A stretch of 64,000 nt of DNA, from positions 2,790,001-2,854,000 of the forward strand of contig CM074518.1 in the NCBI GenBank assembly GCA_037379345.1, written 5' to 3'. Under the pieces are notes generated by a model. It saw only the letters and a program-made list of their open reading frames with translations. It made no database searches and was not told where the DNA came from. Within the stretch, counting starts at the first letter, position 1. The number at the start of each line of letters is the position of its first letter. Source of the stretch: Perna viridis (taxonomy: Eukaryota). A program made the position numbers and the translations under genes. Positions 9,201-63,200 of this stretch are shown here, one piece after another.

Positions 9201-12200
9201 AATTATGCACATACTTTTGAAAAAAAATAAGTGACTGTGATAACTATATTTTCAGTTTCTTAAAAGTGAGTTTTTGACAAACCCTTACAGATGTAATTAA
9301 GATGGTGTCCATGCAAAAACCAGGCAGTTAGTGACACATACAAATTTTGTTTTCAGAAAATTTTCATCTAAATTTTATCTGAAATGCATCCATCCTCACA
9401 GCTGAATGATGGTTTTTTGATGATTGTTTATGTTATATGATACTAAGATGTGAGTCCAGTTTACAGGTCTATCAGTATAATTTAATTTGAGTTGAAAATG
9501 TACATTAAACATGATTGAACATCCCTATAACACAATACAGGGGAAGATCTTAGAGTAAGCTGTGCACTAGACATCAAAGAAGGCATACCACCACCAAATG
9601 TCAAGTTCTTCCGTGGAAAGCGTGAATTAAAGGATGACACTAGAACTCGTATCATTCACAAAGACAAGGCATCATCGCTTAACATAAATAAAGCCAGATT
9701 TGCTGATGAGTCAAAATATACTGTGATTGTAGAACAGGATGGTGTCAATGTTGACCAAGCAACGTTCAGCGTCTTTGTTAAAGGTTTGTTTCAGCTATTA
9801 GAGATTCACAAGAAGCGCAGCAAGGGGAATTAATCAGCGGCAGGGTACTGCTTTTGAAACCTAAGAGACAACTGCTTTTCATGTGCTAATTACTATTTTT
9901 ATCACTATTTAGGCCCCCTTGCGCCTGGTAAGTGTCAAAAGAAAAATCATTATGGAGATTGTAATATTTGTCTTGAAAGCTGTTCCTTTGCAGGACAAAT
10001 ATTTAAAAATACCATATGATTTGAATGCCTAATTATTTGCTTAGATAAAGGATCTTGCGTAAGAAGGTCTGCGGTATGCTGCTTTAGTTGTAAGGTTGAT
10101 TAGCACTTATAGTATTAAGCGTTTGCATGCTATATGTAGGCCAAACAAAACTATTTGTTATTTTCTCAAAATAAAACTTTAGGGCCTTTATTTTATATTT
10201 TATGGTAGAATTTACTTTTATGCTTTTTTTGATGATCTTTAGTCCTTATTTTGTTTCACTCTGATCAATCAATTTTTTGTATGCAGTTTTTTGTTTGGCC
10301 ATACAATAACAATATTGGCTTAAATTTGAAACAGTTGGTTTATTTGTTAAATGGCTTCATTGTTATCAATTGTTTATAGTAACAAAATTTGATCTAGTTT
10401 TTGTTTGGTCTTTTGTCATAACACTATCTGTTTCGTCCTTCATATTTGTCTGTTTCTAAGCATGTGACTAGCTAAATGTAGATCAGATCAATACGCATGA
10501 AACAGAATTGCTCTTACAGCTGAACTTCAATTACTGTACTTAAACTGTTCACAGCAAACTTTAAATTATTTCCATTTCTCTGCTTTCTATGTAATTATAC
10601 CCCTACCCTCTCTGTGTTATTACAAACTATCATGTGAAATTTCAAAATTCCACACATAACAAAGCCAAATTTGTCAGTTTCCTTGACAATTTGTTTTAAC
10701 CTTTTTTAACTGCCCCTCATTTATGCAGTACCTATGCACCTATATGTCCTCCTCCCCTGCACCAGCCACAGCAAAGCACAGCTCAGCAGCTATCGGGGCA
10801 GCAGCAGCCATCGCAAGCAACTTGGGGAAAGATCAGAGCCGCTAGCTCATTAAAGGCAAGTATAGGGAGATTGGATTCAATGCAAAGTCCAACCTGTAAA
10901 ATAAAGGTCACCTGTCTGTATAAGCTTGGTTTAAAGTGTTCATATTGATGTAAGACTCAAACATGTAAAAATGAGTTTAAATTGTTCATATTGATGTAAG
11001 GCTCAAACCTGTAGAAGTTGACTTTAAAGTGTTCATTTTGATGTAAGACTCAAACCTGTAGAAGTGTGTTTAAAGTGTTCATATTGATGTAAGACTCAAA
11101 CCTGTAGAAGTATGTTTAAAATGTTCAAATTGATGTAAGGCTCAAACCTGTAGAAGTTTGGTTTAGTGTTCATATTGATGTAAGGCTCAAACCTGTAGAA
11201 GTGTGTTTAAAGTGTTCATATTGATGTAAGACTCAAACCTGTAGAAGTATGTTTAAAATGTTCAAATTGATGTAAGACTCAAACCTGTAGAAGTGAGTTT
11301 AAAATGTTCAAATTGATGTAAGGCTCAAACCTGTAGAAGTTTGGTTTAAAGTGTTCATACTGATGTAAGGCTCAAACCTGTAGAAGTTTGGTTTAAAGTG
11401 TTCATATTGATGTAAGGCTCAAACCTGTAGAAGTTCATCCTGATGTAAGACTCAAACCTGTAGAAGTGTGTTTAAAGTGTTCATATTGATGTAAGACTCA
11501 AACCTGTAGAAGTGTGTTTAAAGTGTTCATATTGATGTAAGGCTCAAACCTGTAGAAGTATGTTTAAAATGTTCAAATTAATGTAAGGCTCAAACCTGTA
11601 GAACTTTGGTTTAGTGTTCATATTGATGTAAGGCTCAAACCTGTAGAAGTTGAGTTAAAGTGTTCATCTTGATGTAAGACTCAAACCTGTAGAAGTTTGG
11701 TTTAAAGTGTTCATATTGATGTAAGCTCAAACCTGTAGAAGTGAGTTTTAAAGTGGTCATATTGATGTAAGATTCAAACCTGTAGAAGTGAGTTTTAAAG
11801 TGGTCATATTGATGTAAGCTCAATACTGTAGAAGTGAGTTTTAAAGTGGTCATATTGATGTAAGGCTCAAACCTGTAGAAGTGGGTTTAAAGTGTTCATA
11901 TTGATGTAAGACTTAAACCTGTAGAAGTGGGTTTAAAGTGTTCATATTGATGTAAGGCTCAAACCTGTAGAAGTGGGTTTAAAGTGGTCATATTGATGTA
12001 AGGCTCAAACCTGTGTTAAGTTTTGGTTTTGTTGTATGGTGTCAGCTCAAGGCCACCTTTGGAAGACCTGTGAGCTGCCATTTTTCATTCCAGTGGGGTT
12101 GTTGTCTCATTGACATATTCACCATATCCATTCTCCTTCTATTTAAAGTGTTTGTAATGACATAATGCTCAAACCTGAGATAAATTATGATGAGAAAGGG

Positions 12201-15200
12201 ACCTTTACTACAGGTTGGGCTAATTTTTTCTCACTTTAGAAACATGTTTTGAATTCATTTTCGAAAAGTTCCAGATATTGAGTTAAAGGGACACATTTAT
12301 AATTACTTCTATGAGATGATTTATAATCCTTGGAAAACAAATACCTACCTAAAATCATCTCTTTGTAATTAAACTAATAATAAAGGTAAAATATTTTTAT
12401 TAGTAACTTTATTGTTGTCTTTAATTGAACAGATTGTGATTGTTGGACATTTTTACTGATATTAACTTACTTCAGATTTTAAATACTTCATCACTTGCTA
12501 TAAAAGTGTCATTTTTTGTGGTACTCCTGGTCTGTCAAACCACAAAATTTGGTTCTTAGCAAAAAGGAAATTTTCAAATGATTATGAAGACCATTTTTTG
12601 AAGAATATTCAAATTAACATTCCTTCTCTTAACCACAAAAATTTGTTCACACAAAAGAGGGCACTTTCACAGAATTTCTAAAATTATAAAAGTGTTGTAA
12701 ACAATGCTTGGAAATATTAACATACTAAATACCATAATGATGGTTATATTTGACATCTTTAAAGGCATCAAAAGAAAACATATCTCGAAATATACTACCA
12801 GACATTTAGAGAGATAGCTGTAAGAAACTGGGTGAATTTTTTTTTTTGAAAAGATGGTGAGAAATTATGTGAAACATTAGTGAGAAGTTATGTGAAACAT
12901 AAGTGTGAGTAAAATATTAGTGAGAAGCTATGTTTAACATTTGTGAGAAATTATATATAACATTAGTAAGAAGTTATGTGAATCATTTGTGAGAAGTTAT
13001 GTGAAACATTAGTTAGAAGTTATGTGAAACATGAGTGAAAAGTTATGTGAAACATAAGTGAGAAGTTAGGTATACATGAGTGAGAATTTATGTGAAATAT
13101 TAGTGAGAAGTTATGTTAAACATTTGTGTGAAATTATGTATAACATATGTAAGAAGTTATGTGAACCATTTGTGAGCAGTTATGTTAAACATTAATGAGA
13201 AGTTGTGTGAAACATTTTGAGAAGTTATGTGAGCATTGGTAAGAAGTTATGTGAAACATTGGTGAGAAGTTATTTGAAACATTGGTGAGAAGTTATGAAT
13301 ACATTGGTGAGAAGTTATGTGAAACATGAGTGAGAAGTTATGTATACATTTGTGAGATGTTATATACACATTAGTGAGAAGTTATGTTAAACATTAATTA
13401 GAAGTTGTGTGAAACATTTTGAGAAGTTGTGTGAAACTTTTTGAGAAGTTATGTGAAACAGTGGTGAGAAGTTATGTAAAACATTGGTGAGAAGTTATGT
13501 GAAACATTGGTGAGAAGTTATGTGATTTATAAGGGAGAAGTTACGTGAAATATTAGTGAGATGTTATGAGAAGTTATGTGAAATATTAGTTAGAAGTTAT
13601 ATGAAATAGGGGTGATAAGCTATGTGAATAATAAGGGAGAAGTTATGTGAAACATTGGTGAGAAGTTATGTATACATTGGTGAGAAGTTATGTGAAACAT
13701 TAATTAGAAGTTGTGTGAAACATTTTGAGAAGTTATGTATACATTGGTGAGAAGTTATGTGAAACATTTTGAGAAGTTATTTGAAACATTGGTGAGAAGT
13801 TATGAATACATTGGTGAGAAGTTATGTAAAACATTGGTGAGAAGTTATGTGAAACATTGGTGAGAAGTTATGTGATTTATAAGGGAGAAGTTACGTGAAA
13901 TATTAGTGAGATGTTATGAGAAGTTATGTGAAATATTAGTTAGAAGTTATATGAAATAGGGGTGATAAGCTATGTGAATAATAAGGGAGAAGTTATGTGA
14001 AACATGAGTGAGAACTTTGGTGAATATTAAGGGTGAAGTTATTTGAATCATTTATGAGAAGTTTGGTGAATATTAAGGGAGAAGTTATAAGAAAAATAAG
14101 TGAGAATTAATGTGAAACATTAATAAAAAATAAAGTGAAACATTACTGAGAGGTTATGTGAACCATTAACAAAGGAAGTGATCAGCTTGTGTTGTCATAT
14201 GATGGTCTGAAAAAAAAACTACATATAATCCATTACTAAGGTTCCTCTATATGGGGTTTAACAATATTTCCATTGTAATCACTTATGACTTATTTTTTCT
14301 GTTGTTTGCAAGGTAATTTTTATCTCTGTTTACAGATCCAAAGGACTCAGCTATGGACTTCAGATCTCTTCTAAAACACAGGTATGTAACCTTTGCATGA
14401 AATGTATTCTTTTGTTAAAATAAAATTAATTTACCAAAACTAGAATAATTTGAGATGATGAGGAAATAGATTTGTTATGTTGGTGCCTGAACCATTGAAG
14501 AGAGACAGTTTAGTTTGTACAATGAATATAAAAATAGAAGATATAGAAACCTGTTTAAATCGAACCCTTAATAATCTGAAAACCTGTCTAAACTCTCAAC
14601 TCTGAATAATCTGAACACCTGTCGAAACAGAACTCTGAATAATCTGAAAACCTGTCTAAACCAGACCCTGAATAATCTGAAAACCTGTCTAAACCAAACT
14701 GAAAAAATCTGAAAACCTGTCTAAACCGAAATGAATAATCTGAAAACCTGTCTAAACCGAAATCTTAATAATCTAAAAACGTGTCTAAACCAAACTGAAT
14801 AATCTGAAAGCCTGTCTAAACCAAACCCCAAATAATCTGAAAACCTGTCTAAACCAAACTCTGAATAATCAGAAAAAACAGTCTAAAACAGATTTTGTTT
14901 AAACTTCCATCAACATTTGTACAAGATTTTGTAACTTTCCTTGATTTTAGTATACTTATAATGATATTTAATTTAATGTCATCATCCTTTGTTGAAATAA
15001 TAAAAATTGCGTGTGACTTTGTAAATGACTTAGTAATGTGTTATCATTCTCAGTGTAAACCTAATGTGTTACTATTCTTAGGGGTATATGATGTATGATG
15101 GCTTTGAAATACTTTTTTCGAGAGATGACATTTGTTAATACGGTTGAAAGTCTCAGGAGAAAACAAATAACTTTAAGTCATTTGTTTCAGGGAACATAAA

Positions 15201-18200
15201 AAGAAGGCAGATGATGAAGATGACATTGATTGGGGCTCATTAAAACCAGGTTTGTTGTCCGCCAGTCTGTTTCCCAATATCCTAAATATACATTATCTGC
15301 GGCTATTGAAGTCAAAATAGTTCTGTTCTTATAAGTCACCATTTCTATATAATGAACTGTTTATTAAATACATACAATTTATCATTTTCCTATGAAACAA
15401 TACTTTTCTAGAACTGTCTAAGAAAACTGTTGGAATGGAATAGATAATTTAATACATTGGCAGGATTTTATTTTGCAATGACATTTTATTGTAGATTATT
15501 AATGTTCGAAATCAAAGTTTGTAATTTTTGTTAATATTTTTTGTCAACATATTATTATCATTTAAGATGCCATTTATACTAAAACTTTGAAAAAATAACA
15601 AATAATCCACTAATTACGAGACTTTTGAAGAACGATGGTGATTTGAGGGAAGTTTCCACTGTCCTTGTATAAAGCTTTCTATGTTGTCTTTAAGATCAGA
15701 CATTTGAAGCTTTTGATAGGTTTTATTCAGAGTTATGTGTACTCTTATTTCAGTGGATACTCCACCTGGACCGCCTCAGAGTATGTGTAGTCGAGGATTC
15801 CCCCTTAAGCTAGAGCAATTCTGCAGGGCGCTGTTATCTGCTGTGTCGAACCAACTGCAACTTATATTTTGCTATTCAGTAAATTGAAAAATTGGTTCCA
15901 ATTGAAAGAGTGAAAATTTTTTTTCCAAATTTCTAATATCTTGATGATAAACAAATCATAGGATATTTTTTTTTCAATAACAGACTATCTCCGCCCGTAT
16001 CTAAAGGTACTAGCTTCAGATGATGGAAATCACATAATTAAGGGTTTGCTAAAATATCTGCTTTTATTTAACTACTTTAATGATATCTGTAGTATACTAG
16101 GTAAAATTATTGTGACTATGGTCTTTGAATGACTAATTTCCTCCTTATTTTTGAGGTATGTTTTATATTTGTTAAATTGCACATTTATTATTCTAACACA
16201 AATATTTTGTTTTCAATCAGTTTTGTAAAGAAAGAGATATTTGAGTAATAAGTTACAGTTGGTTGGTTTTGCAAGCGCATTGATATCCAGATTTGTGACT
16301 GTCTTTATTGCTTTGTAGATTTAGTTTTGTTTTTATAGATAGAGGTTGTTTTACATCAGTAGGGTCACAAGTTCATAATTAGACATAAAGTGATTTGTGC
16401 TTATTGAAGAACAAAATAGTTCAAAAGTCACCAAATTTGTAGTATTAAAATGATTCTGGCATGCCTAAATAGTTAGATTTAAGAGTGACACCTGATTTCT
16501 TTAAATGTTGTTGGGTTTCTGTTAAATTTAAATTTGGAGAAGTGTGCTCTATAGTTTAGATAATGACATTTACAGTTTTAACTGAATTGATTTTTTTCTC
16601 CTTTTTAAAGGCAGGCATAAAATTGTCAAGATCTGTTGAAGAATTGACTTGAATATAAAACATTTTGGGTTTTTTTAGCAGTTTATGCTTAGCTGTTGAA
16701 ATTCCGTTTATCTATATGTATTTATTTTAAGTGCCTTGTGTTTATATCGAAGTTTGAATTATTCGTTCATATATACATATACTTTTTTTTATTTTATGTA
16801 TGCTTGTATATTTGTGCTGTGCCTTAGTGTTTAACAGGCACAAAATGCATTCTTCATTTTCTGTAGCAATTTAATTTAAAAATCCTGTTGAAATTCACAC
16901 GTAAGAAAAGCGCACTGCTCTTCAATAACTATTGCTGCTTTGATCACGACATTTAAATGCTTTGTATTTAACTACTGCGCATATTTTTTTGCAGATTTCA
17001 ACAAAAATATTAAAAATATATTTTGCTTTTTCACGACTTATATGTACTATTCAACTTTCCTCTAAAACCTAAAAGAATCTAACTAATATTGACCAATCAA
17101 AATCATGGATGAATATTTAATATTGTATAACCTTATATATGTTTGTATCATAGTTAAGAAAGAAAGACGTGCATCCATTATTGACACGATGAAGGAACAG
17201 ATAGCAGAGGATACTCATAGCAAGGTATGTTATACTATGACAGAGTTACCTCTCTTTGAATACTGTAAATTTGAAATGTTTGCATCAGTACCTTTTTTAT
17301 TAAACATTTCAGAATAAGAGACTTTTTTCATTTGATTTTTTTTAATTATTTGAGGTGATTGCATGATAATAATGCATAATTGAACAAATAGAAAACTAAA
17401 ACTTTTGGCTAATACTGTATTGCTTTTGATGCTATTATTTCTGAATTTTCAGTATTCAGTTTGATATTTTGACATTTTAATAAATGATCTATATTATTTG
17501 ACACACTGTTTATGACTTCAGCTGTACAGTTTATTTTAGCATCATTATTTAGAACAAATTATTAGTATTAAATTGTTACTTGTGTATAAATCTATAATGT
17601 ATATCCTAATATAAATCTCTTTGGAAGTACCATACTAAATATACATGTATGATTGAAGCCAAACAGTGCTAGTTCCTCCAGGAGAGGGTCAACTATTTTT
17701 GAAACAGAACCTAAATTATTAAGAAGAGGGACACCAATTTTTGATATGGACCCCAAATTTAGAAGAGGGTCATTGATGTTAGATGCTGAGCAAAAGTTCT
17801 CAAGACAAGGCTCTACCATTTTCGACACTGAGCCAAGAATTCAACCGTTTAGAAGAGACAGTTGGATGCGAAAGTTGTCCACCTCTTCCACTGGCTCAGA
17901 AGCAGATTTTTTTCATGTGCAATTACGCCATCGAGACACTTCAAAAGACAAGGCAGTATTTCTTGCTTTGATGTGTCTTTTGTAGATCCGCTAGGTTTTT
18001 TGTGTGTCTATTTTTAGATTTGCTAGTCAATTCTATACATATATGATATATTTAGTTAGATACATTGTTGATGACTCTGTTTACTACTCTTATAATGTTA
18101 TCAATTACGGTCAGTTATAATTGAGAATTTTATAGGTTTGAATTTTAAATAAACAATTTTGAAAGAACACAAAAGGTGTATTCCTTTTGGACATAGACAT

Positions 18201-21200
18201 AACTATTGACTATTAGTTTAATTTTGTTCACGGTGCATGAGGGGCTTAATGGTAATAGGTTAAAGTGATATATGAAATCAAAATATGTTCGCTTTACTCC
18301 ATTTTCTTACCGATTTGAGCTGATTATAATTTACACTATATATTTCACTTACATGAATCCTGTAGGTAACTATATATCAGTCAGTTTTATACAAAATTCT
18401 TGCTGGGAAATACTTAAAATGATTATTACATGTATGTAATCTATATTTGGTATTATGTAAATATGGCTCTCATATTACTTTACTAATATTTTATGTCATT
18501 AAATGTTGTTTTTTTTAGTTTTCAGTTTTTGCTAGGTTATTAGTAGAATAATTAACAAGTTGTTTTTAACTTTATTTTGCATCTGTAGCCAGAAATAGAT
18601 TTGAAAAACCGCAGACTCTCATTGAAACATAATGTACATGTAAGTGTAGGTTGAAGTCCTTCTGCACATATCACATCATGCCTTTCTCTATACACATTAT
18701 TCTCCTTGGTAGCAATTCTCTGTTGTCTTATTCCAGAACATATCTATTGTTATTATGGAAACTCAGCATTACCATTACCATTCAGATTATCATCCTTCAT
18801 TGATGTATACTACTTTTGGCTGAAATAATACAGTAAAATTAAATCAGACTTCTCCATTTGTTCACCACTGTTATCTCATGGTGCTATCCACACTGTTGAT
18901 AAGAGACCTGGGAAGAGAGTATCAAATTGATTCCCTTTTTTTTAAAGAAAAAATATGAAAAAGTTTTAAAAAGTTTAAAGAGATTTGGAATTCCATAAGT
19001 TTATTAATATTAAAATGAGCTTTGTATGTTAATGTTGAGCTTTCGTATTATAAGAGCTTCATACTGGACATATATTACACATCCTCTTCAGTCATTTACT
19101 TCATCCATACAGCACTTACAATCATATAATACATGTTGTTTAGTAATCTGTTTCATAAAATATTATAAAAATTTGAATATCCTCATATCTTCAAGATTTG
19201 TTAAAATAATCTATTCCTATTTGTTTCATTATGGTTTAGGTGTAAAAGGAATGAGGAAATATTCTGTGGAGATTATTTTATGAAACAGAACCCATTTACT
19301 GCACATTCAGTAGTTATAGATTTTCTAGTGCTTCCTATATACATACTGGTAGTTGATGCAGAATTTCAACCATTTTCTGCTGTATGCAATTCTGAAATGG
19401 TTCCTTTATATCCCATGATTCCTGTTTCCTCTATATATTCAAGCACAAATGTTACCCTTCCACTTTTTAGCTTTAGAACTTACAGATATGTTACCAATCA
19501 TTGTAGTCTATATAGTATGCATACAGCTACATACATTAATTTAGTAGGTGTCTTTCTATTCATTTTCTTAAAAAAAAACAGTAATGATAAATTTGTTGTA
19601 ATCTGGAAGGAATATTGTACATTTGTTACTGAAGACTGTTTTTTGTATTGAGATTTTTATTGTTCTACTGGTTTTTCTATTTTTGAAACTTTTATAGGGA
19701 GGTGTTTTCTATGAATTGGGACAGTGTGACGAAGTCACTAGGATACATACTTTCTCTGTTTAGATTTTTATCCACTCAATAGCTCTATAGTTCTGGTCTT
19801 TTCTCATCATATACATTCTGTATCATATTTAAGTTTTTTCATGATGCCTTGTTTCCTTTGAGGTGTTTCATTGTTTCAAGTAATGAGTAGAAGTTTTTTT
19901 CTCTCTTTGGTATTCTATTGGTCATGAAGTAATATACCATTGTTGATTTTTTTAAATTTTATTTTTGATAAGCATGAGTTCTTGGTTTCAATGAGTTTGT
20001 GTGCATTTTCTATAATTTCTACCAGAGTTGATTTTCTTTTTTATTTGATTGTCTTGTCATAGTTAAGGAACATTTTATCTTATTGCCAAATATTTCCATA
20101 CCATGTCTTATTTATCCACATTATGGTGTGTTTCACTCCCCTGTTTCCTCTAACCCTATACCATCTTTATTTTTTAGCCTCAATCACAGAAGGTAAAACC
20201 CCTAGTTTTGATGTTGTAACTCTGTCTGTAAGAATAATGTAATCACAGTTATTAATTTTGGGAAATTATTAATATAAATAATACTTAACAAATTAATACA
20301 AAATCAAAATATTAATATAATTAATATATAAAACTATTACTACAGGGGTGACACGAAAGGATATTTTCCTAATTTTTAGGTATATTTGAATTTTTTCATA
20401 CAATTCTTTTCTGCTTTCTATACATTTTTTGACAATTATTTATATTATTTTCATCTGTATTAGCAAATTCCATTTGTGAAATGAAAACCATTCTCCAATT
20501 GTCCTATATGGTGTCACTCCTCTCTCACTAATACAGATTACTTCAAAGATGTATTATTTACTTTTGATATGGAGAGAAAAAGGTATACATAGAGAGCCAT
20601 TTGTCTGAGGTCACATAAGAAATTAAACTGTTAAGAAATATATCAGCTCAAATACTTAAATGAATAATAGAATCTATTTAAAGTTTATTATACAGATTTC
20701 AGTATTTTCCAGTATTCATAATTATATAAGAAATTGGAAAGATTGATTACTGATTGTAGGATGCTTTACACTTTTATTAGTTTTATTTGTTTCTTTTGAT
20801 CCTCTATCTGTATTGAAATTATTAAAATGTGGACATTTGTTAAGCCCAGTCCCAAGAGAGAGTATACATTGCTTCAAAGCATTTCCATATTTATTTGTAG
20901 GAGTGTTTATTACCCAGGAATCAGTCTTTTCACTTTCTTCAGTTATTATACCAATGCCTACTGTATTGATCAGTATCTCTAAGTCCTTGTCTTATAAAGA
21001 CTACTTTCCACATCGTATACAGTGTAATTGTAGAGTACAGATTACCCCAGTAGTTTATTTATATTTTGCAGTATTATTAATGGTCAGATGATTTCATTCA
21101 ATCATATTTCCATTTCTTTTAATTATAATATAGTTTCAAATCTGTCAATAATTTTCAATGTATACAGTAGTTCATTTGGTATAATAGTTGAATAGTTGTA

Positions 21201-24200
21201 TGTTAAGTTAAGAAATTCCAATAAAGTATCAATATTATTGCTTGACCTTATTGCACTAAACAGAGAGACTCAGCTTTTGCCCAAAGAAAACTATCTCGAG
21301 AAAACTTGGAGGTAGAGAGAGCAACAGTAGATAAACTTGAGGCCTTGGAACAACAACGTAGATCCTCTATGCAACAATTCCGTAGGCCCTCCCTTGTTGA
21401 TGTTATACCTGATTGGCCAACACTACAACATAGGGAGGTTAAAAGAGAGGTAGATGAGAAATCGTTGTCACTAACACTAACATTGCAGCATCCTTATGCT
21501 TCTCCGTTTTATTTTCAAAATTTAATTTGAGTTATCTCCCTTACCTCATATTTTAATTTTAAGCATGCTCTCAGTTCATTGCTTTGATAATTGTTCTTCT
21601 ACTCATGTGCTTTATTTATAAACACTTATGAAGTGAAATTATAAATTTGGTAAATTAATTCTGGTATGTTATACTCATTTTTTATCTAAAATATCCAAAA
21701 ATCTTAAACCACTGGTAAAAAAATATTTAATATTCTATTCTAATAAATTTATATATGCTTTGACATCAGATAATATTTGGATAGCAGTAACATACTGAGA
21801 AACTAGTTTTCACATTATGGAGACAATAGGGGATGGTATTGTACTAATTGGTTAAAGTTTTTCTGTTGTGCAAGCATGATATTTCAATATAAGGAGTGCA
21901 GTGGTTATATAGGGGGTAGACAAACAGCTGAATAGTAGGATTAGTTGTGTCTTATTCAAGTTCTATTTTGGCTTTAATGTAGGGATAGATTTTTTGGATG
22001 GCTTTGCATTTACTATATTTATTGCTTTTTTTCAAATTCAGCTTTATATGGTTTTTTGTGTATGTGTTTGGCAAGAAATTGTATTGATTTATTATGTTTT
22101 TTATACCAGACTTGTAAGGTTGCTATAGTTTCCTCTCATCCACTGTTAGCAGTGTTAATGTTTAAGTCTTTATTTATCACTTTTCTTATTAAGTTATTTC
22201 ATCTTTTCATTTCTTACAAGTTTATTTTTCTTTTATTCTGAATTCTTTTTTCTCCATGGCTAAACTAATCTTTTCTAACTTTTACCTGTCTTCTCATGGT
22301 GTAGTATGAGACATCTATAGACAGAATGACCTTTGACCTTCATTTAGGCATGAAAATGTTTAATATACAGTTGTTCATTTGTGTTTCCATAGAAACCAGA
22401 CAAGTTCATGATAGAACTGGATGATGTCAAGGCTGTTGAAGGAGACAAAAAAGCTGCTTTTGAAAGTGAATTTTGTAAACCTAATGCCAAGGTCAAATGG
22501 TTTAAAAATAAACTGGAAATCTTTGCTGGACATAAATACCACTTTGAGAATGAGGACAAAAAATACAGACTTGTTATTAACAATGTCAAACTTGAGGATG
22601 GAGGGAAGTACACACTGGAATGTAACGGTGTTAAAACAGGAGCTTGGTTATATGTTGAAGGTATGTAGAATTAATCATTTCTAACCAATGCAGAAATAGA
22701 AAAAATATGTAGAATCAGAGAATCTGTTCAAACATGATTACTTAAAAGTTCCAAATTTCAATGTTACAACTGTAATAATTGTTACATTTGTAATACAATT
22801 GTTGATATCTTGTTTTAGCCAAAACGCCTGAGTATGGATTTACACAGAAACTCCCAGAGAAATATGAACAAACCAAGAGGAAGGAAGCTAACTTAGAGTG
22901 CTTTGTCAATGATACAAGAGCTCGAGTTAAATGGTTCAAAAATGGCCAACCAATCGAGGTATAGTAACAGTGTGTGTATAGATATTTTGTAGTTATTAGG
23001 TTTTGTTAAAGTTTGACTTGATTGGTTAGGCTATGAGATACTGAAAACCAACTTATTTTGGGGATGGTCTATTTTTGCTCATTTATTACAGGAATAAGAA
23101 AAAAAATTGAATAATTTATGTATAATTATTCAGTATTGTGTAAAAATGCAACAAAAGCCTCTACATAAATAAGTTGGTTGCAAATAGATTCATAATTCAA
23201 GGTCTCAGATTTTCAAAAGAAAGAAAAATTTGGGCAGTGATGTATTTTTCATAATTGTAAATTATTTAGAACAAGCTCTGCTTTATAATATGAAAAACTT
23301 GATACCAGTCTTGTTAAAGAGATTGCAGCAGGTCCCTAAAATCTGGTTTGATTTTTTAATTTCTCAAACACCTACCGATGCTATTATTATATTCTTACAA
23401 CCTGAATTTTGCATATCAACTTGAAAAGTTTTGATAAGTAAAATTTAAATTCCATTAAAACATGTATCTTTGCAAATTCTTTTCATTAAACATTTTTCAT
23501 TTTCTGTTAAACAGCATTTAACAGTCTGCATGATATTTATAAAGATTGGTACCAGAAGTCAATTATACAAAACTTTGTTAAAATTATGTCTTATTTCAAA
23601 TTTTACTGTCATACTAAATTACAAAGAAATTTTACATTGACTGCTTTTTTTGGGTTAGTTGCTGGGACTTTGGAGAGTAGATATTGAATGGTTATGATTT
23701 GTCTTGTTTGAAATAAAAGCAATTATTTGGTACATTGTATAAGAATTACTGTTTGTTTTGTAATAGTGATTTGGTCTGTTGGGAGATGACACAATAGAAT
23801 CTCATTTAATCATATTATTAGTGTTTGTAAATATGTAAAGTCATGCAAAGTTTAATCTTTATCTTGTAAGTAATCCAGCAAAGTTTAACCATAATCAAGG
23901 ATCCTTTAATAAATTAATGAAATTGAGAATTAATAATTTGATGTTAACTTATTTTAAGTAGGTGTTCCAATCATATTTCTTTGATTTTTGTCCAGTTCAT
24001 TATCAAAGGACACTTATCACAATTCAGGACTTCAAAAGAAAATTCTAAGTGATCAAATATCATACTTTTGGAAGAAAGTGTTGTGGAAGCATGGAATCTG
24101 ATTGGTCTTCATATCCGTCTTCACTTGCAATGTAATCAAAAATTTGAAAATCGTATCGAAATCTCTTTGGTATTACAGAGTTAGGTTTAGTCCTTGGTTT

Positions 24201-27200
24201 GTACATTTTATGGGAATGATTTGGTTTAAGTGGATTAGCCTCTGGTGGCTTACTTTTTATTTTTTTCCTGATCTTTGATGGATGAAACCCAACCATGCCA
24301 TGAGGTCCTTCTTCCACAGGTGCTAATGTCAGTCTGTTAGCCTGTGATCTAGTCTGAATATTTTTCATCCATGGTGGAACTGTAGATCTTGGTGAATCAT
24401 ATATTTGTGGATGTCCAGTCCCTCCAGACTCTAATTTTATATTTGGATCTATAAATTGTGTTGACTCGAACTTTGGTAAGTTGTTGCTTTTGATATGATG
24501 GTGAACTTTGGGGGGTTTGTTTGGCTTATGTCCACTCCATGGGATGGGTGAAGAATATGCTGCCCTTAACTTATGCTTAGCCAAGATGTCCTTTTCCAAA
24601 TATTGAAGTTTGCCCTGATTTTTCAGGTCATAAAGTGTTTCTCTTGCTACTGGCATTCGTTTCTTGATCTTTGTTTTTATGTATGGTCGACTAGATTCTG
24701 CAATCCTTGGCATAAAGTACCAATATAGTATTGTTAGAATAGAATTCAAACTTTGTTCAGATACCTTTCTAGTATTCCAAACTGCTGCTTTTACATCTGA
24801 TGCTGTTGCATTGTGGGAAATTCTTATTTTTTCTAGCCATCTATTTCCCAAAATGTTGAAAGTTTCTATGTCTTGAGGAGGAAGGAAGAAAATTGAATTT
24901 CGACAACTGATTCCTGATTCAAAGAGAACACTTTCATGATTTTCTCGGATTTCATTTCCTGCCACTAGAAGTCTGCTATATCTCAAGGGATATCCAGTTT
25001 TTAACTCAATTTTATGCTTAAAACTAGATATTGTTTGGTTGACTCTCAGATAAGTCTTGTAGATAACTCCATCTGGTGTATGGGCAAATACAGGAAAGGT
25101 TTCTTGTTTCAGAACTAGGGGAATTTCAAGGTCAAATACTGCATCCATTATTTTGCTGCTATTTGGAAGTTTCTGATTTCCAATAGTTAATTCATAAAGC
25201 GTTGCATTTGGTACTCCCATTTTTTCTAGTTTCTTTTTCAAATGTTTCACTGTTTTATTAGCAGATATTCTTAGATTTTCTATAATGCCATGTCCTATGC
25301 TTATTTTTAATGGAACTCCAAATACTATATCTCTATCAATTTGAGTCATGACAACATTCATGATAACTAAGTTATCATACTCCAGATGTCCCATGGGGGA
25401 GGAAAAATCAACTCTTTTACTGTTCTTATAAAGTCGTATAAGGTCAACAGGAATGTTTGTTAGCCCATGGAGCATGAATGCAAGAATAGACCAGCGATCA
25501 TATGGTGACACGGTCACAGAGTATCTCTCACCAGTTTCTGTCACTACATTAACAGTGGAAAGTCTCATGTTACTATGGTGAACTACGGTTGACAGGAGAA
25601 GTTTTTCTCCTGTGCGAATACCTAAGTATGCTATACAGAAATCCCAGTTTACTATTTTGTTTTTGTATTGAAGCACAAGAACATGGATTGGCACATATAA
25701 TTCATGAAGTCCTGCATCCTCTGGCCCATTTGAGCTGAAAGCCCTATTGAAAACTGCATATATTATATCCATTCCAGTGCTACATGGGTCTAAGTAAAAG
25801 CGGTAGTTCTTGCCCCAGAATGTTTCAACATTAATTAGCAAGTCAAAATGTGCTTGTATCATCACATACAATTTTGAATCATTTTTTATTCTATATTCAA
25901 ACAGTCTCCTATTATTTTCCAGGGCATTGTTTGAATACAAAATTTCTTGTCTCTCTACAGGTATTCCTTTCCTTCGTCGAATCAATGTTTTGATTTTTCG
26001 CACAGTCCAAGATAAGTCTACAGGAAGGTTAAATTTTGTTTTCAGTTGACTTATTTCAATATTTACACTGGCATTTTCCTCTGGCATCACCATGACAACA
26101 GACCCAGGTCTAACACTGTAAACTGTCTTCAGATTAACAGGTGATAGTTGGCCTGGACTGAGAATCCGAAGTTTATGCTGAAATCTTTGGAAACCTAAAT
26201 GTTTCTCAGCATACTCAATAATGTTATTAACCAGATATCTGTCAGGTTCAAAGATAGCAATGCTATCATATTTAGCAAAGGACCAAAGTGCTACATTTTG
26301 ACCTGCCAAGGGATGGAGGTGCATGAATTCAGTATTTTCATCAGTTTCAAAATGTTCAAAATCTGAGTTGTCATCATCTTCTGAGTCTGACATCCTCTCC
26401 TGCATATTCCGTAGATGTTGTCTTTGTAGCTGTCCATCATGACCAGGTCTCTAGAAACACAAAAAATAGTCAGAAATAACAAAATTTTCCTGAGGTTTGT
26501 TTTGATTTTTTGATGATTGAAACATGGTTTGGCTTGAGGAATATTTAATAGTTGTGATTTATAAAAACTGGATCCTTGACTGACTAAGAAAGCTTGTTTC
26601 ATGTTCTAAAAAGCTTCTTTCCTCTACTGTTAAAATTAGTTTTCTTCATTTCATTTGGAGATAGGATCTTGAATTAGTTGTTTCCTTTTTTATGCATACG
26701 TGTTTGTCAATAAAATATATTTATTTTAGTATCCAAATTTATTTTTTATGTTAATGATGAAAACTGTAAGATTAATGCCCATAAACAATGTAACAGGTAA
26801 AAATTGTTTTATTAGGCACCAGAAACATTGAGAAAAAACATTTAGACTTTTAAATAAGCAATTTTATATCATGAATAAATATAGAATAAGTATATCTTGT
26901 CTAAAACTTACTTGGTAATGAACTGGTAACACCATATCTGTCTCTCTGAATGGTCCATTCATAAAGTCGGCATTCATCGTACTAGATTTCTATGTCCTAC
27001 CCAAAACATTCATAAAGTCAACGTTCATCTTACATGATTTCTATGTCCTGCCCAAAACATTCATATTGACATTATGTATGTGAACACTATTACATATTTT
27101 GATTTCCTATATCAATGTTCCATATAAATTGTTTTCTCAGTCCACTAAATTCCATTTAAAACTCGTATGGTAAATAAATAAACTTAGCTATTCAATTTAA

Positions 27201-60200: not shown

Positions 60201-63200
60201 ATTAAATTTAAGAAAATCAATTAAAAATCCATTATTAAGAAATGTCCTCTCCTGCCTATGTTGACAAAAGATTGGCTAGCACCCATCTGCATCAAATTAT
60301 TAATTTAGTAGATCATAATTACATGTATTATGTTAATTTTCCCTATATTTTACCATAAATATTATTCATGTCATAAGTCAGAAAAAGTTTGTATTATTAG
60401 TGGCTTTATGCACACTTTTTTCTGGTTATAAATGAGTAAAACATATTTTATTGTGTAATTTGTTAATGTCAGTAATTTCTTGGCTAGATTCTGATTATTG
60501 TCCTGTTTTAATAGCACCACCCAAGATCAATGTACCAAAGAGATTCCAAGATGTTGCTATTTTCGAGAAAGGAGAAAATGTTGTATTGAAAATTCCATTT
60601 ACTGGTAGCCCCAAACCTACCATCACATGGTTGCATGATGGAGAAGAGGTCAAAGGTCGGGGTTACAATAGCGAAGTCACTGAGAGGCATGCCATCTTGA
60701 CTATTAAAGATGCTGGAAAGGACCAAGATGGACCATATAGAATTACAGCTGAAAATTCACTTGGGTCAGATTCAGCAGTAATAAAGATACAAATCAATGG
60801 TAAGTTCTTGTTTCATCTCTGCTTCCTCAGAAAAATGTGTTGATTTAAAATAATCTATACCTGTATCAGATTTAAAGAGAAATGCCAATAAGGTATTCAT
60901 CAGCAAAAATGGCATTTGTCAAGGAAATGTTAATGTATTACACCCAACATAATATAAAAAGATTCGTTTTACATCCTTTATTACTGGTAAACTTGAATTT
61001 TATTTCCCATTTCAGACCGTCCAGATCCACCACGTTTCCCAACTTGTGAAAACATTCGTGATGATTCTGTTCTATTGACATGGAAACCACCATTGAATGA
61101 TGGTGGTAGCTTTATCACACAGTATGTCATTGAGAAATGTGAGCCTCCCAACAAAAACTGGATCAGAGTGGCAACCAGCAGGTAAAGTATCATTATTAAT
61201 AGAAAAGGATTTTTTTTGCATAAACAAGCTCTTGAATAGTCTTATTTAAGTACTTGTTGTTCTGTAAGAATTGGTAACAGGAGATTGTTAAGTAAATTGA
61301 GCTCTAAATGTATTTTGCAGAATGATTTACAAAACCTTCTTCCTTAAATTTCCATGATAAAATAACTAAGTTGATAATTTTAATCTACTTGAACTGTCAC
61401 TAACCAATCAATTTTATCTACAGAATGTGTTTCTTCAACATCACCAGTCTAACACCAGAACATGAGTATCAGTTCCGTGTGATTGCCGAGAATTTCTATG
61501 GATCCAGCGACCCATGTGAACCCACTCCTGTCATCAAAACAGACATACCTGATGCTATCAAGAAGAAAAGAGCTATGGAAGGTTTGGAAACAGGGATTTA
61601 ACTTTTTTAAAAGCACACCGTCTGCCGATCACTTACTGTGAACAGTGATTTTTTGGCATCTTTCTGTTTTTTTAGCAGCTTCTGTAATACTTTTGTTCAG
61701 TTATGGGTCTGGATTGTTCCTTCAATCTGTTTGATATTTTCTTTGAAGAAGATATTATCGACAGTTGAATTTTTGTTTTATGGTACAAACATTTCACAGT
61801 TTACAGTATTTATCTAATATCAACTATAAGGAATCAAACTGAAACTATAAAAAAAACTTACAATAATCACATGATATCTTAATCACAATAATCACATGAT
61901 ATCTTATAATAATCACGTGATATCTTAAATACATTTAATTGAATTGCAGATGAATTTGGTAGAAAAGTAAGAGGTACTGGACCAAAGGTAGACAACTATG
62001 ACAAATACTGTAAGTTCTACTCTGTAACTTTAGGATAGGAAGAAATGGCTTTATTACTTTGTAAAGTTTACTCTACCTTAGGGAGGTCCATTTTATAACA
62101 CAACTATTAGTCTGCTCAGGAGAAAATATTGTCATTACATTTAAATAACTTATTAACCAGGAAAAACCCTTCTTCTGAATACTTCATTAACCAGGGAGAG
62201 TCTTCCTTTTCAATGTTTTTTTGACCAGAAAGAACCATCCTTCCCGATGCTTCATTGACCAAGAAAAACCCTCCTTCTCAATATTTCATTGATTAGGAAG
62301 AACCGTCCTTCTGGATACTTTTTACTGGGGAAATCCCTCCTTCTACATACTTCACCCTCCTTCTCCATATTTCATTGACCAGGGAGAACCTTCCTTCTAA
62401 AAAGTAAATGAAATAGAAACAACAAAAAATACTCTCATGCCACTCAATGTTTGTTGACATGTGATTGAACTGATCTTTTTATCAGCTGTTTTGTAGTTAC
62501 TTCCCAGAAATTGTAAACAAAACAATAGTATTTGTTTGTCTGAATGTAGTGTAGTTGTTTTTTATTTCTGAAACTATCTGTATTATGATTTACAGACCAT
62601 GACTTATGGAAAAAGTATGTACCCCAGCCTGTATCTGTCAAAACAGGAAATGTCTCCGATTACTATGACATACTGGAAGAACTTGGGAGGTAAGAAATAT
62701 GCTGGTACAGGAAATTGTCTCAGATTTTGGTATTCTTAAAGAACTAAGAAGGTAAGATCTTTACTGAGACAGGAAATTGTCTCAGATTACCGGTACTATG
62801 ACATTCTTAAAAAACTTAGAAGGTAAGATCTTTACTGAGACAGGAAATTGTCTCAGATTACCAGTACTATGACATTCTGGAAGAACTTTGAAGGTAAGAA
62901 ATATACAAGGTTACTAGTAAATACTTCAAAACATTGCCAAAAGGTCTTCATCAAGTGTAAACACACCTTTAAGTAAGCTTTGAAAGGTTAACTTAATTTC
63001 TGAAAGAATCCAGTCCAAATCATAGCCAAAATTTGATTTTGTTTGTAATTCAATTGCACATTGTGGACCAAATCAACATAAATGATGTCACAGTATCAAA
63101 CCAGATTACACAAAATATCCTGATTTGGTCTTAGAGAACTAACCAACCAAAACTCATTTTACAAATCAAATTAATTTATTTACTGATAAACTGTTAATCA

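Follow-up and report, generated by a model that had tools for sequence, protein, structure and literature searches.

A candidate cassette exon with tandem PKA-type motifs in the twitchin linker of Perna viridis

Introduction

We describe a candidate exon in a Perna viridis gene identified from its sequence as twitchin. The stretch of DNA analyzed, hereafter the window, comprises 64,000 nucleotides (nt) of NCBI GenBank assembly GCA_037379345.1 (contig CM074518.1, positions 2,790,001 to 2,854,000 of the forward strand), and the candidate is a 99-codon open segment within one of its introns, upstream of an exon that carries a D1-type phosphorylation site. Judging by its reading frame, its tandem units and the way these units differ, the segment very probably is, or once was, a twitchin coding exon that arose by tandem duplication of a phosphosite module. 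It may well be a cassette exon that is skipped by default and included in a specific context, a claim that we hold tentatively. Whether it is such a cassette or an exon that has been retired, the finding is a candidate and not a demonstrated isoform.

Catch muscle maintains its force while spending almost no energy, and it is released when protein kinase A (PKA) phosphorylates twitchin. The number of twitchin sites that matter, and the way in which they cooperate, are still debated. According to an excerpt of PMC12040844, D1 (Ser-1075) lies between Ig7 and Ig8 of Mytilus twitchin and is phosphorylated by PKA. An excerpt of PMC6059360 credits Kusaka et al. 2008 with reporting an isoform that contains D1 and is restricted to catch muscle, and refers to tissue-specific D1-containing isoforms in Mytilus. 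The Ig7/Ig8 numbering is that of Mytilus.

Results

An open segment lies in frame within the twitchin linker

Translation of 17659–17955 on the plus strand gave 99 residues without a stop, identical to those quoted in the original prediction, within a full open frame of 110 codons (17653–17982). The segment is 297 nt long, or 294 nt if a GC donor is used, and is a multiple of three either way. Its phase, 0-0, is compatible with the phase 0 verified by RNA at the donor 17224 and at the acceptors 20178 and 21264. The GC content is 0.418, compared with 0.242 and 0.265 in the flanking intron. When composition was followed in 60-nt steps, a GC island was seen from ~17640 to ~17980, with values of 0.38–0.48 in a T-rich intron of 0.18–0.27; the borders of this island match those of the open frame, and it has an excess of A over T, like the RNA-verified exon 17154–17224.

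The identity of the host gene comes from the rest of the window. Ig- and Fn3-like open segments occur on the plus strand throughout, with kinase exons at the end, and the kinase exon 63198–63467 has twitchin (PDB 1KOB) as its best match (E 1.7e-36); by sequence, the gene is twitchin. Pfam I-set domains were found in the open segments 9531–9830 and 22393–22665, on both sides of a linker. RNA contigs, together with their mapped loose ends, gave an exon chain of 15191–15249, 17154–17224, 20178–20192 (a microexon that is optional), 21264–21449 and 22393–22660 (Table 1). The candidate is placed within this linker, in the intron between the exon with an RRAS site and the exon with the D1-type site. 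The putative D1-type site of exon 21264–21449 likewise stands between the two I-set exons; it is common to three protein fragments (P0033–P0035) and partly shared by two metagenomic contigs (L003 and L004), all described below.

The candidate occurs once in the 723-Mb genome. Its DNA and its peptide each matched this one place, and it is therefore not a fragment of a transposon or of another gene's pseudogene; both identities were ruled out. A structured RNA was also ruled out, as Rfam gave no match at E ≤ 1 over 16800–18800. Pfam gave no match to the plus-strand open reading frame (ORF) of the candidate at E ≤ 0.01. A tblastn search of the candidate against the window returned only itself and its internal repeats (E 1e-4 and 2.8e-4), every other match having E ≥ 1, and so showed no paralogy with the neighboring linker exons.

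Tandem units supply an array of PKA-type motifs

Tandem Repeats Finder (TRF) reported a period of 42 nt at 17683–17772 (score 97), and a repeat search found four copies of 42 nt, the second to fourth being 71, 64 and 62% identical to the first. The four units and the partial fifth that follows them are spaced by 42, 39, 42 and 48 nt, every one a multiple of three. A module of 13–14 residues (RRGS/T-x-I/M-F/L-D/E-x-E/D-P-K) was probably duplicated in tandem to yield the candidate exon.

The encoded peptide contains five strict [RK][RK]x[ST] motifs (RRGS, RRGT, RRGS, RRDS and RKLS). Shuffled versions of the same peptide contained 0.77 such motifs on average, and the probability of at least five was 0.00035 (20000 shuffles). 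The density of five motifs in 99 residues is comparable with that of the four verified linker exons (4 in 109 residues), where all four motifs fall within the 85 residues of exons 17154–17224 and 21264–21449. PKA favors a hydrophobic residue at +1 and disfavors proline at that position; by this preference, RRGS-L and RRDS-W would be good sites, whereas RRGT-P would be poor.

These observations agree with much of the original prediction, which had described a phase 0-0 open segment with a 13–14-residue periodicity, set in AT-rich intron, made by internal duplication, and lying upstream of the D1 site of twitchin. It had also counted about six R-R/K-x-S/T-like motifs; five of these stand as strict matches, and the sixth (RQGS) is degenerate.

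The tandem units have diverged in the manner of coding sequence

We compared the four units with one another, codon position by codon position. Pairwise differences numbered 17, 15 and 51 at positions 1, 2 and 3, and the variable columns were 5, 5 and 12 of 13 each (Fisher p 0.0018). The summed ratio of nonsynonymous to synonymous differences (pN/pS) in the plus frame was 0.36. Because the differences are mostly at third positions and the unit spacings are all multiples of three, the candidate evolved as coding sequence, most likely in the twitchin frame.

The units differ by 26–41% at the nucleotide level. In simulations of neutral change by substitutions alone, 0.05 substitutions per site left the ORF open in 33% of trials, and 0.10 did so in 13%. 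Such low survival, set beside the divergence of the units, indicates that constraint acted through most of the time since the duplication. With 25 Ig/Fn3 segments of the window as its training set, a codon-usage score also ranked the twitchin frame best of six, at −1.9 overall and +4.0 in the repeats, a score reached by ~11% of all 297-nt windows. By the same measure, the neighboring intron scored −67 to −115, and −25 and −27 were the scores of two further intronic ORFs.

The candidate is skipped in the available RNA

We placed the contigs of four public RNA-type runs (X1, X4, X6 and X20) on 16800–22700. X1 and X20 contain the same small contigs and so represent at most one sample, leaving ~3 independent samples overall. 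The twitchin contig of X1, X4 and X6 goes straight from 17224 to 21264 (GT..AG), while in X20 the microexon 20178–20192 lies between the two. The linker is therefore alternatively spliced, at this microexon.

Three kinds of evidence weigh against the inclusion of the candidate in present-day transcripts. The first is the RNA itself. With the twitchin contig at a depth of 18–29, all four runs skip the candidate, and no junction was seen at 17659, 17952 or 17955. X6, where the twitchin contig reaches a depth of 29.2, and X4 both have zero depth on the candidate. In X1 and X20 its sole coverage comes from a 275-nt contig (17529–17803), at a depth of 2.8 compared with 18.5 and 17.9 for the twitchin contig. 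This small contig begins 130 nt before the proposed acceptor and aligns colinearly to the genome, and other low-depth pieces likewise fall on plain intron (18093–18243 and more). We read it as pre-mRNA or DNA background, which would pass unbranched through 17659. Among 16 runs taken as RNA, the highest share of words from 17100–18700 was 0.24 (X1), and this is explained by the low-depth intronic pieces.

The second is the quality of the splice sites. The candidate acceptor ends in aag and has 9 pyrimidines in 20 positions, whereas five linker acceptors (four at RNA joints, and 15191 read from sequence) end in c/tag and have 12–16 of 20. By a rough donor matrix, the donor GCA/GTATTT at 17955 stands at the 53rd percentile of the 3853 GTs in the window, compared with the 93rd–99th for five scored donors (four with both sides in RNA contigs, and the donor after 22660 known from a loose end only). 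The GC donor AAG/GCAGTA scores 0.3 by this matrix, and no in-frame donor in 17700–17985 scores above 0.3. No better in-frame site was found nearby.

The third is the protein record. The candidate peptide had no match at E ≤ 0.001 among 1.84 billion representative proteins; proteins of 60–192 residues in a 5.8-billion set yielded five candidates, none of which scored, and the ESM Atlas returned nothing usable. Protein searches of this kind are blind to an isoform buried among clustered long twitchins. When the D1 open frame was the query, three fragments were returned, of which P0033 (94% identical) and P0034 are genomic and P0035 (87%) is a spliced mytilid sequence. P0035 reads ...DWGSLKP-VEGQDQSQLQKPPQM-KKERRPSLVDSMKQHLADSE-VERTPKDQ-RESAQAMRKLS... 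and then continues into the D1-type sequence; at the position of the candidate it has 8 residues only, VERTPKDQ.

The junctions of the original prediction fared unevenly in these data. The coordinates 17224, 20178 and 21264 are real splice sites in the RNA contigs, and the weak acceptor and weak GT or GC donor were described correctly. The proposed acceptor at 18589 was unseen in the contigs and falls inside an antisense exon on the minus strand, and the splicing of the segment as an alternative cassette was not supported, all four runs skipping it.

Several other features of this intron were noted. An acceptor at 17682 (ttcctccag/G) is good-looking, but it leads to an early stop from either verified upstream exon and was rejected. 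An alternative last exon ending through the AATAAA near 18153 is unsupported, given that the X1/X20 contigs continue past it to 18243. One X4 contig joins 18006–18154 to 18167–18243 on opposite strands, possibly a fold-back artefact or an intronic inverted repeat. TGCATG words (Rbfox-type) occur at 17360 and 18234, which is 299 nt before and 279 nt after the candidate; the window has 18 of them compared with 11.4 expected, 2 of the 18 in linker introns, a post hoc hint that is not significant alone.

A retired exon is the strongest competitor of a living cassette

The skipping could be explained if the segment had been a coding exon for a long time, had recently lost its splice sites, and were now silent intron that has yet to acquire a stop or a frameshift. 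We consider such retirement a real possibility, short of probable. It would account for both splice sites being at background level beside strong RNA-supported neighbors, for the skipping in four of four runs with coverage at intronic background only, for the lack of any run with the full segment plus a flanking exon, and for the lack of any database protein that contains the candidate. In the simulations above, ORF survival was 0.63–0.33 at 0.02–0.05 neutral substitutions per site, and a young relic may therefore still look intact.

Other observations speak against retirement. The GC island is still sharp within an intron of 0.25 GC under strong AT pressure, and the ORF is intact for 110 codons. 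A period in which the exon was dead but intact would also have to be short in comparison with the 26–41% divergence of its units. Finally, the tissues of the runs are coded and RNA contigs drop rare variants, so skipping in ~3 samples is absence of evidence rather than proof of absence.

Chance or antisense coding would explain the segment poorly

We also considered that the frame might be open by chance in a GC-richer tandem repeat, such as a minisatellite remnant, that was never coding, with the RRxS motifs being copies of one accidental AGAAGAGGGTC word. Tandem copying multiplies an open frame and a motif alike, and one frame on each strand is open across the repeats. In the non-repeat tail of the candidate, all three plus frames are open, and other intronic ORFs of 114–148 codons are present within the same introns. 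We nevertheless regard this explanation as improbable. The excess of third-position differences and the in-frame lengths of the units are unexpected without coding constraint; no more than 21 of 20000 mononucleotide shuffles of the 297 nt left frame 0 free of stops; the other intronic ORFs have far lower codon scores; and the phase agrees with that of the verified neighbors.

The comparison of codon positions alone cannot pick the strand, because a minus frame with coincident wobble positions is also open across the units, without stops inside them and with a pN/pS of 0.42, and this must be counted against our reading. That frame extends for 82 codons, from 17840 to 17595. Moreover, a spliced minus-strand transcript crosses the same introns. 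It belongs to a nested ubiquitin-like gene that shares 67% identity with its counterpart in M. galloprovincialis, and its spliced form leaves a 796-codon ORF at 24254 and then enters three exons within the twitchin linker introns (Table 1). Selection on an antisense coding exon is nonetheless very improbable: the observed antisense exons are non-coding, having stops in every frame; the transcript terminates ~600 nt short of the candidate, next to an AATAAA near 18578; X6, in which the antisense contig has a depth of 5.5, has zero depth over 17391–18375; in the right third of the GC island, stops close the minus frame, which continues leftward into AT-rich sequence; its codon score in the repeats is −10.2 versus +4.0 for the plus frame; and Pfam found nothing in the minus ORF (best E 0.064).

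Motif arrays on small exons recur in the linker of a distant mollusc

A metagenome scan identified two contigs of the Joint Genome Institute (JGI), L003 (1–6335) and L004 (1–8723), which are 99.6% alike, have a GC content of 0.43, and carry the Ig-linker-Ig region of twitchin from one distant mollusc. Their Ig exons are 37–43% identical to those of the window, and the D1-type motif is 72% conserved. The linker spans 4 kb and has five small exons with strong splice sites, on which there are six motifs (RRAS, RRLS, RKAS, RRSS, RKVS and RRAS-LAE/VIPDWPTLQ). From this chain, arrays of basophilic-kinase motifs on small exons appear to be the normal build of the linker. A homologue of the candidate was not found in these distant contigs (best E 1.4). 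The D1-type motif of L003/L004 is split by an intron after RRASLAE.

The remaining linker features of the window are collected in Table 1. The inferred exon 14336–14381 is in frame upstream of the verified chain and encodes a DFR motif that recurs in L004 (as DFRGLL) and at the beginning of P0035; DFRxxL is the motif through which myosin light chain kinase binds actin. Before 17152, the twitchin contigs have a loose end that maps to 15218–15247. A microexon-like sequence at 15754–15781 on the plus strand (tttcag/TGGATACTCCACCTGGACCGCCTCAGAG/gtatgt) encodes VDTPPGPPQ in the phase left by exon 15191–15249; the twitchin contigs of X1, X20 and X6 skip it, and P0035 has VEGQDQSQLQKPPQM at the matching place. 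From the first RRxS serine to the D1-type serine there are 64 residues both in P0035 and in the microexon isoform of the window, and the intervening exons differ between the two in sequence and in division. Elsewhere in the window, another twitchin intron holds a long tandem array with a 64-nt period (~330–1900) and a ladder of near-identical 63-codon minus-strand frames.

Table 1. Coordinates of the candidate, the twitchin linker exons and the antisense exons in the window
Feature	Position	Strand	Basis and remarks
Candidate cassette exon	17659–17955	+	297 nt, 99 codons, phase 0-0; five [RK][RK]x[ST] motifs
Four tandem units	17680–17850	+	Starts 17680, 17722, 17761, 17803; encode R-R/Q-G-S/T-x-I/M-F/L-D/E-x-E/D-P/Q-K/R
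Partial fifth unit	starts 17851	+	Shorter, 10 residues
Ig (I-set) exon before linker	9531–9800	+	Pfam I-set E 2.7e-09; putative borders
Inferred linker exon with DFRSLL motif	14336–14381	+	Regular-expression match; acag/gtatgt borders; matches P0035 start and L004 exon A
Linker exon	15191–15249	+	30-letter loose end of twitchin contigs maps here; cag acceptor, GT donor
Upstream exon with RRAS site	17154–17224	+	Donor after 17224 to 21264 (X1, X4, X6) or via microexon (X20)
Alternatively used microexon, PQSQK	20178–20192	+	15 nt; in X20 contig between 17224 and 21262; absent from X1, X4, X6
Exon with RKLS, RRSS and D1-type site	21264–21449	+	Joints 17224 to 21264 and 21449 to 22393
Ig (I-set) exon after linker	22393–22660	+	Pfam I-set E 1.8e-11; joint 21449 to 22393
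Antisense non-coding exon	20102–20225	−	Joined from 24254 inside 796-codon ORF; loose end behind 20225 maps to 24254–24283; GT..AG on minus strand
Antisense non-coding exon	19347–19566	−	RNA contig
Last seen antisense exon, non-coding	18578–18819	−	X6 contig; CT..AC joints (GT..AG on minus); stops in all frames; AATAAA just beyond 18578

Discussion

If the candidate is a living cassette, it would be skipped by default, and its inclusion would most likely be confined to a tissue, stage or condition outside the samples. The units encode Arg-Arg through repeated, purine-rich AGAAGAG words. Purine-rich words resemble classical exonic enhancers, and it is a possibility that these repeats act as such; because the candidate's own splice sites are weak, inclusion would be helped by them. 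Inclusion would add 99 residues, probably disordered; between the start of the RRAS exon and the end of the D1 exon, the count of PKA-type motifs would grow from 4 to 9; and the distance from the RRAS serine to the D1 serine would stretch from 59 or 64 to 158 or 163 residues. Present-day inclusion, phosphorylation by PKA and an effect on catch are what we infer for such a cassette, and a phospho-rheostat function may reasonably be drawn from its place and its motifs.

In the work of Butler et al. of 2010, peptides around D1 and a neighboring site, called DX, reportedly bind thin filaments only when unphosphorylated. Taken to its full extent, the proposal would be that a mytilid lineage has gained an optional module of 99 residues, which places five tandem PKA-type sites between the two phosphorylation-sensitive thin-filament-binding sites known in the N-terminal linker of twitchin, changes the number and spacing of contacts (64 to 163 residues), and gives a graded or thresholded release of catch in particular muscles or stages. 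We regard this extended form as unlikely.

An optional exon that multiplies sites in a regulatory linker would, if real, be a natural experiment: thin-filament binding and sensitivity to cyclic AMP (cAMP) could be set side by side for isoforms with 4 and with 9 motifs, at two spacings. If instead the exon has been retired, it would be a record of linkers growing by duplication of a phosphosite module and shrinking by the loss of an exon.

The closest known system is the Ig7-Ig8 linker of Mytilus twitchin, which is the same gene, lies between two I-set exons, and contains D1; the D1-type sequence of the window is shared by the mytilid fragment P0035. The Mytilus linker has tissue-specific isoforms according to the excerpt of PMC6059360, and the linker described here is alternatively spliced too, by way of its microexon. 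Among the descriptions of Mytilus twitchin that were found, none is of an isoform with the tandem RRGS module, and P0035 has 8 residues in its place. No description of such a cassette was found in the literature searched, the scope of which excludes the primary twitchin papers.

Two more distant systems offer parallels. The M-domain of cardiac myosin-binding protein C, also a thick-filament protein, is disordered, links two Ig domains and has several PKA sites of the RRxS type, and its phosphorylation loosens binding to the partner filament. The likeness is an analogy only: the M-domain belongs to another gene family, and its sites are constitutive rather than carried on an optional exon. The spring-type exons of titin have RNA-supported inclusion and tune length and elasticity, whereas no inclusion was seen for the candidate, which carries kinase motifs. 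What the candidate would share with them is the design of a symmetric-phase exon, derived by duplication, that encodes disordered or modular sequence between folded domains.

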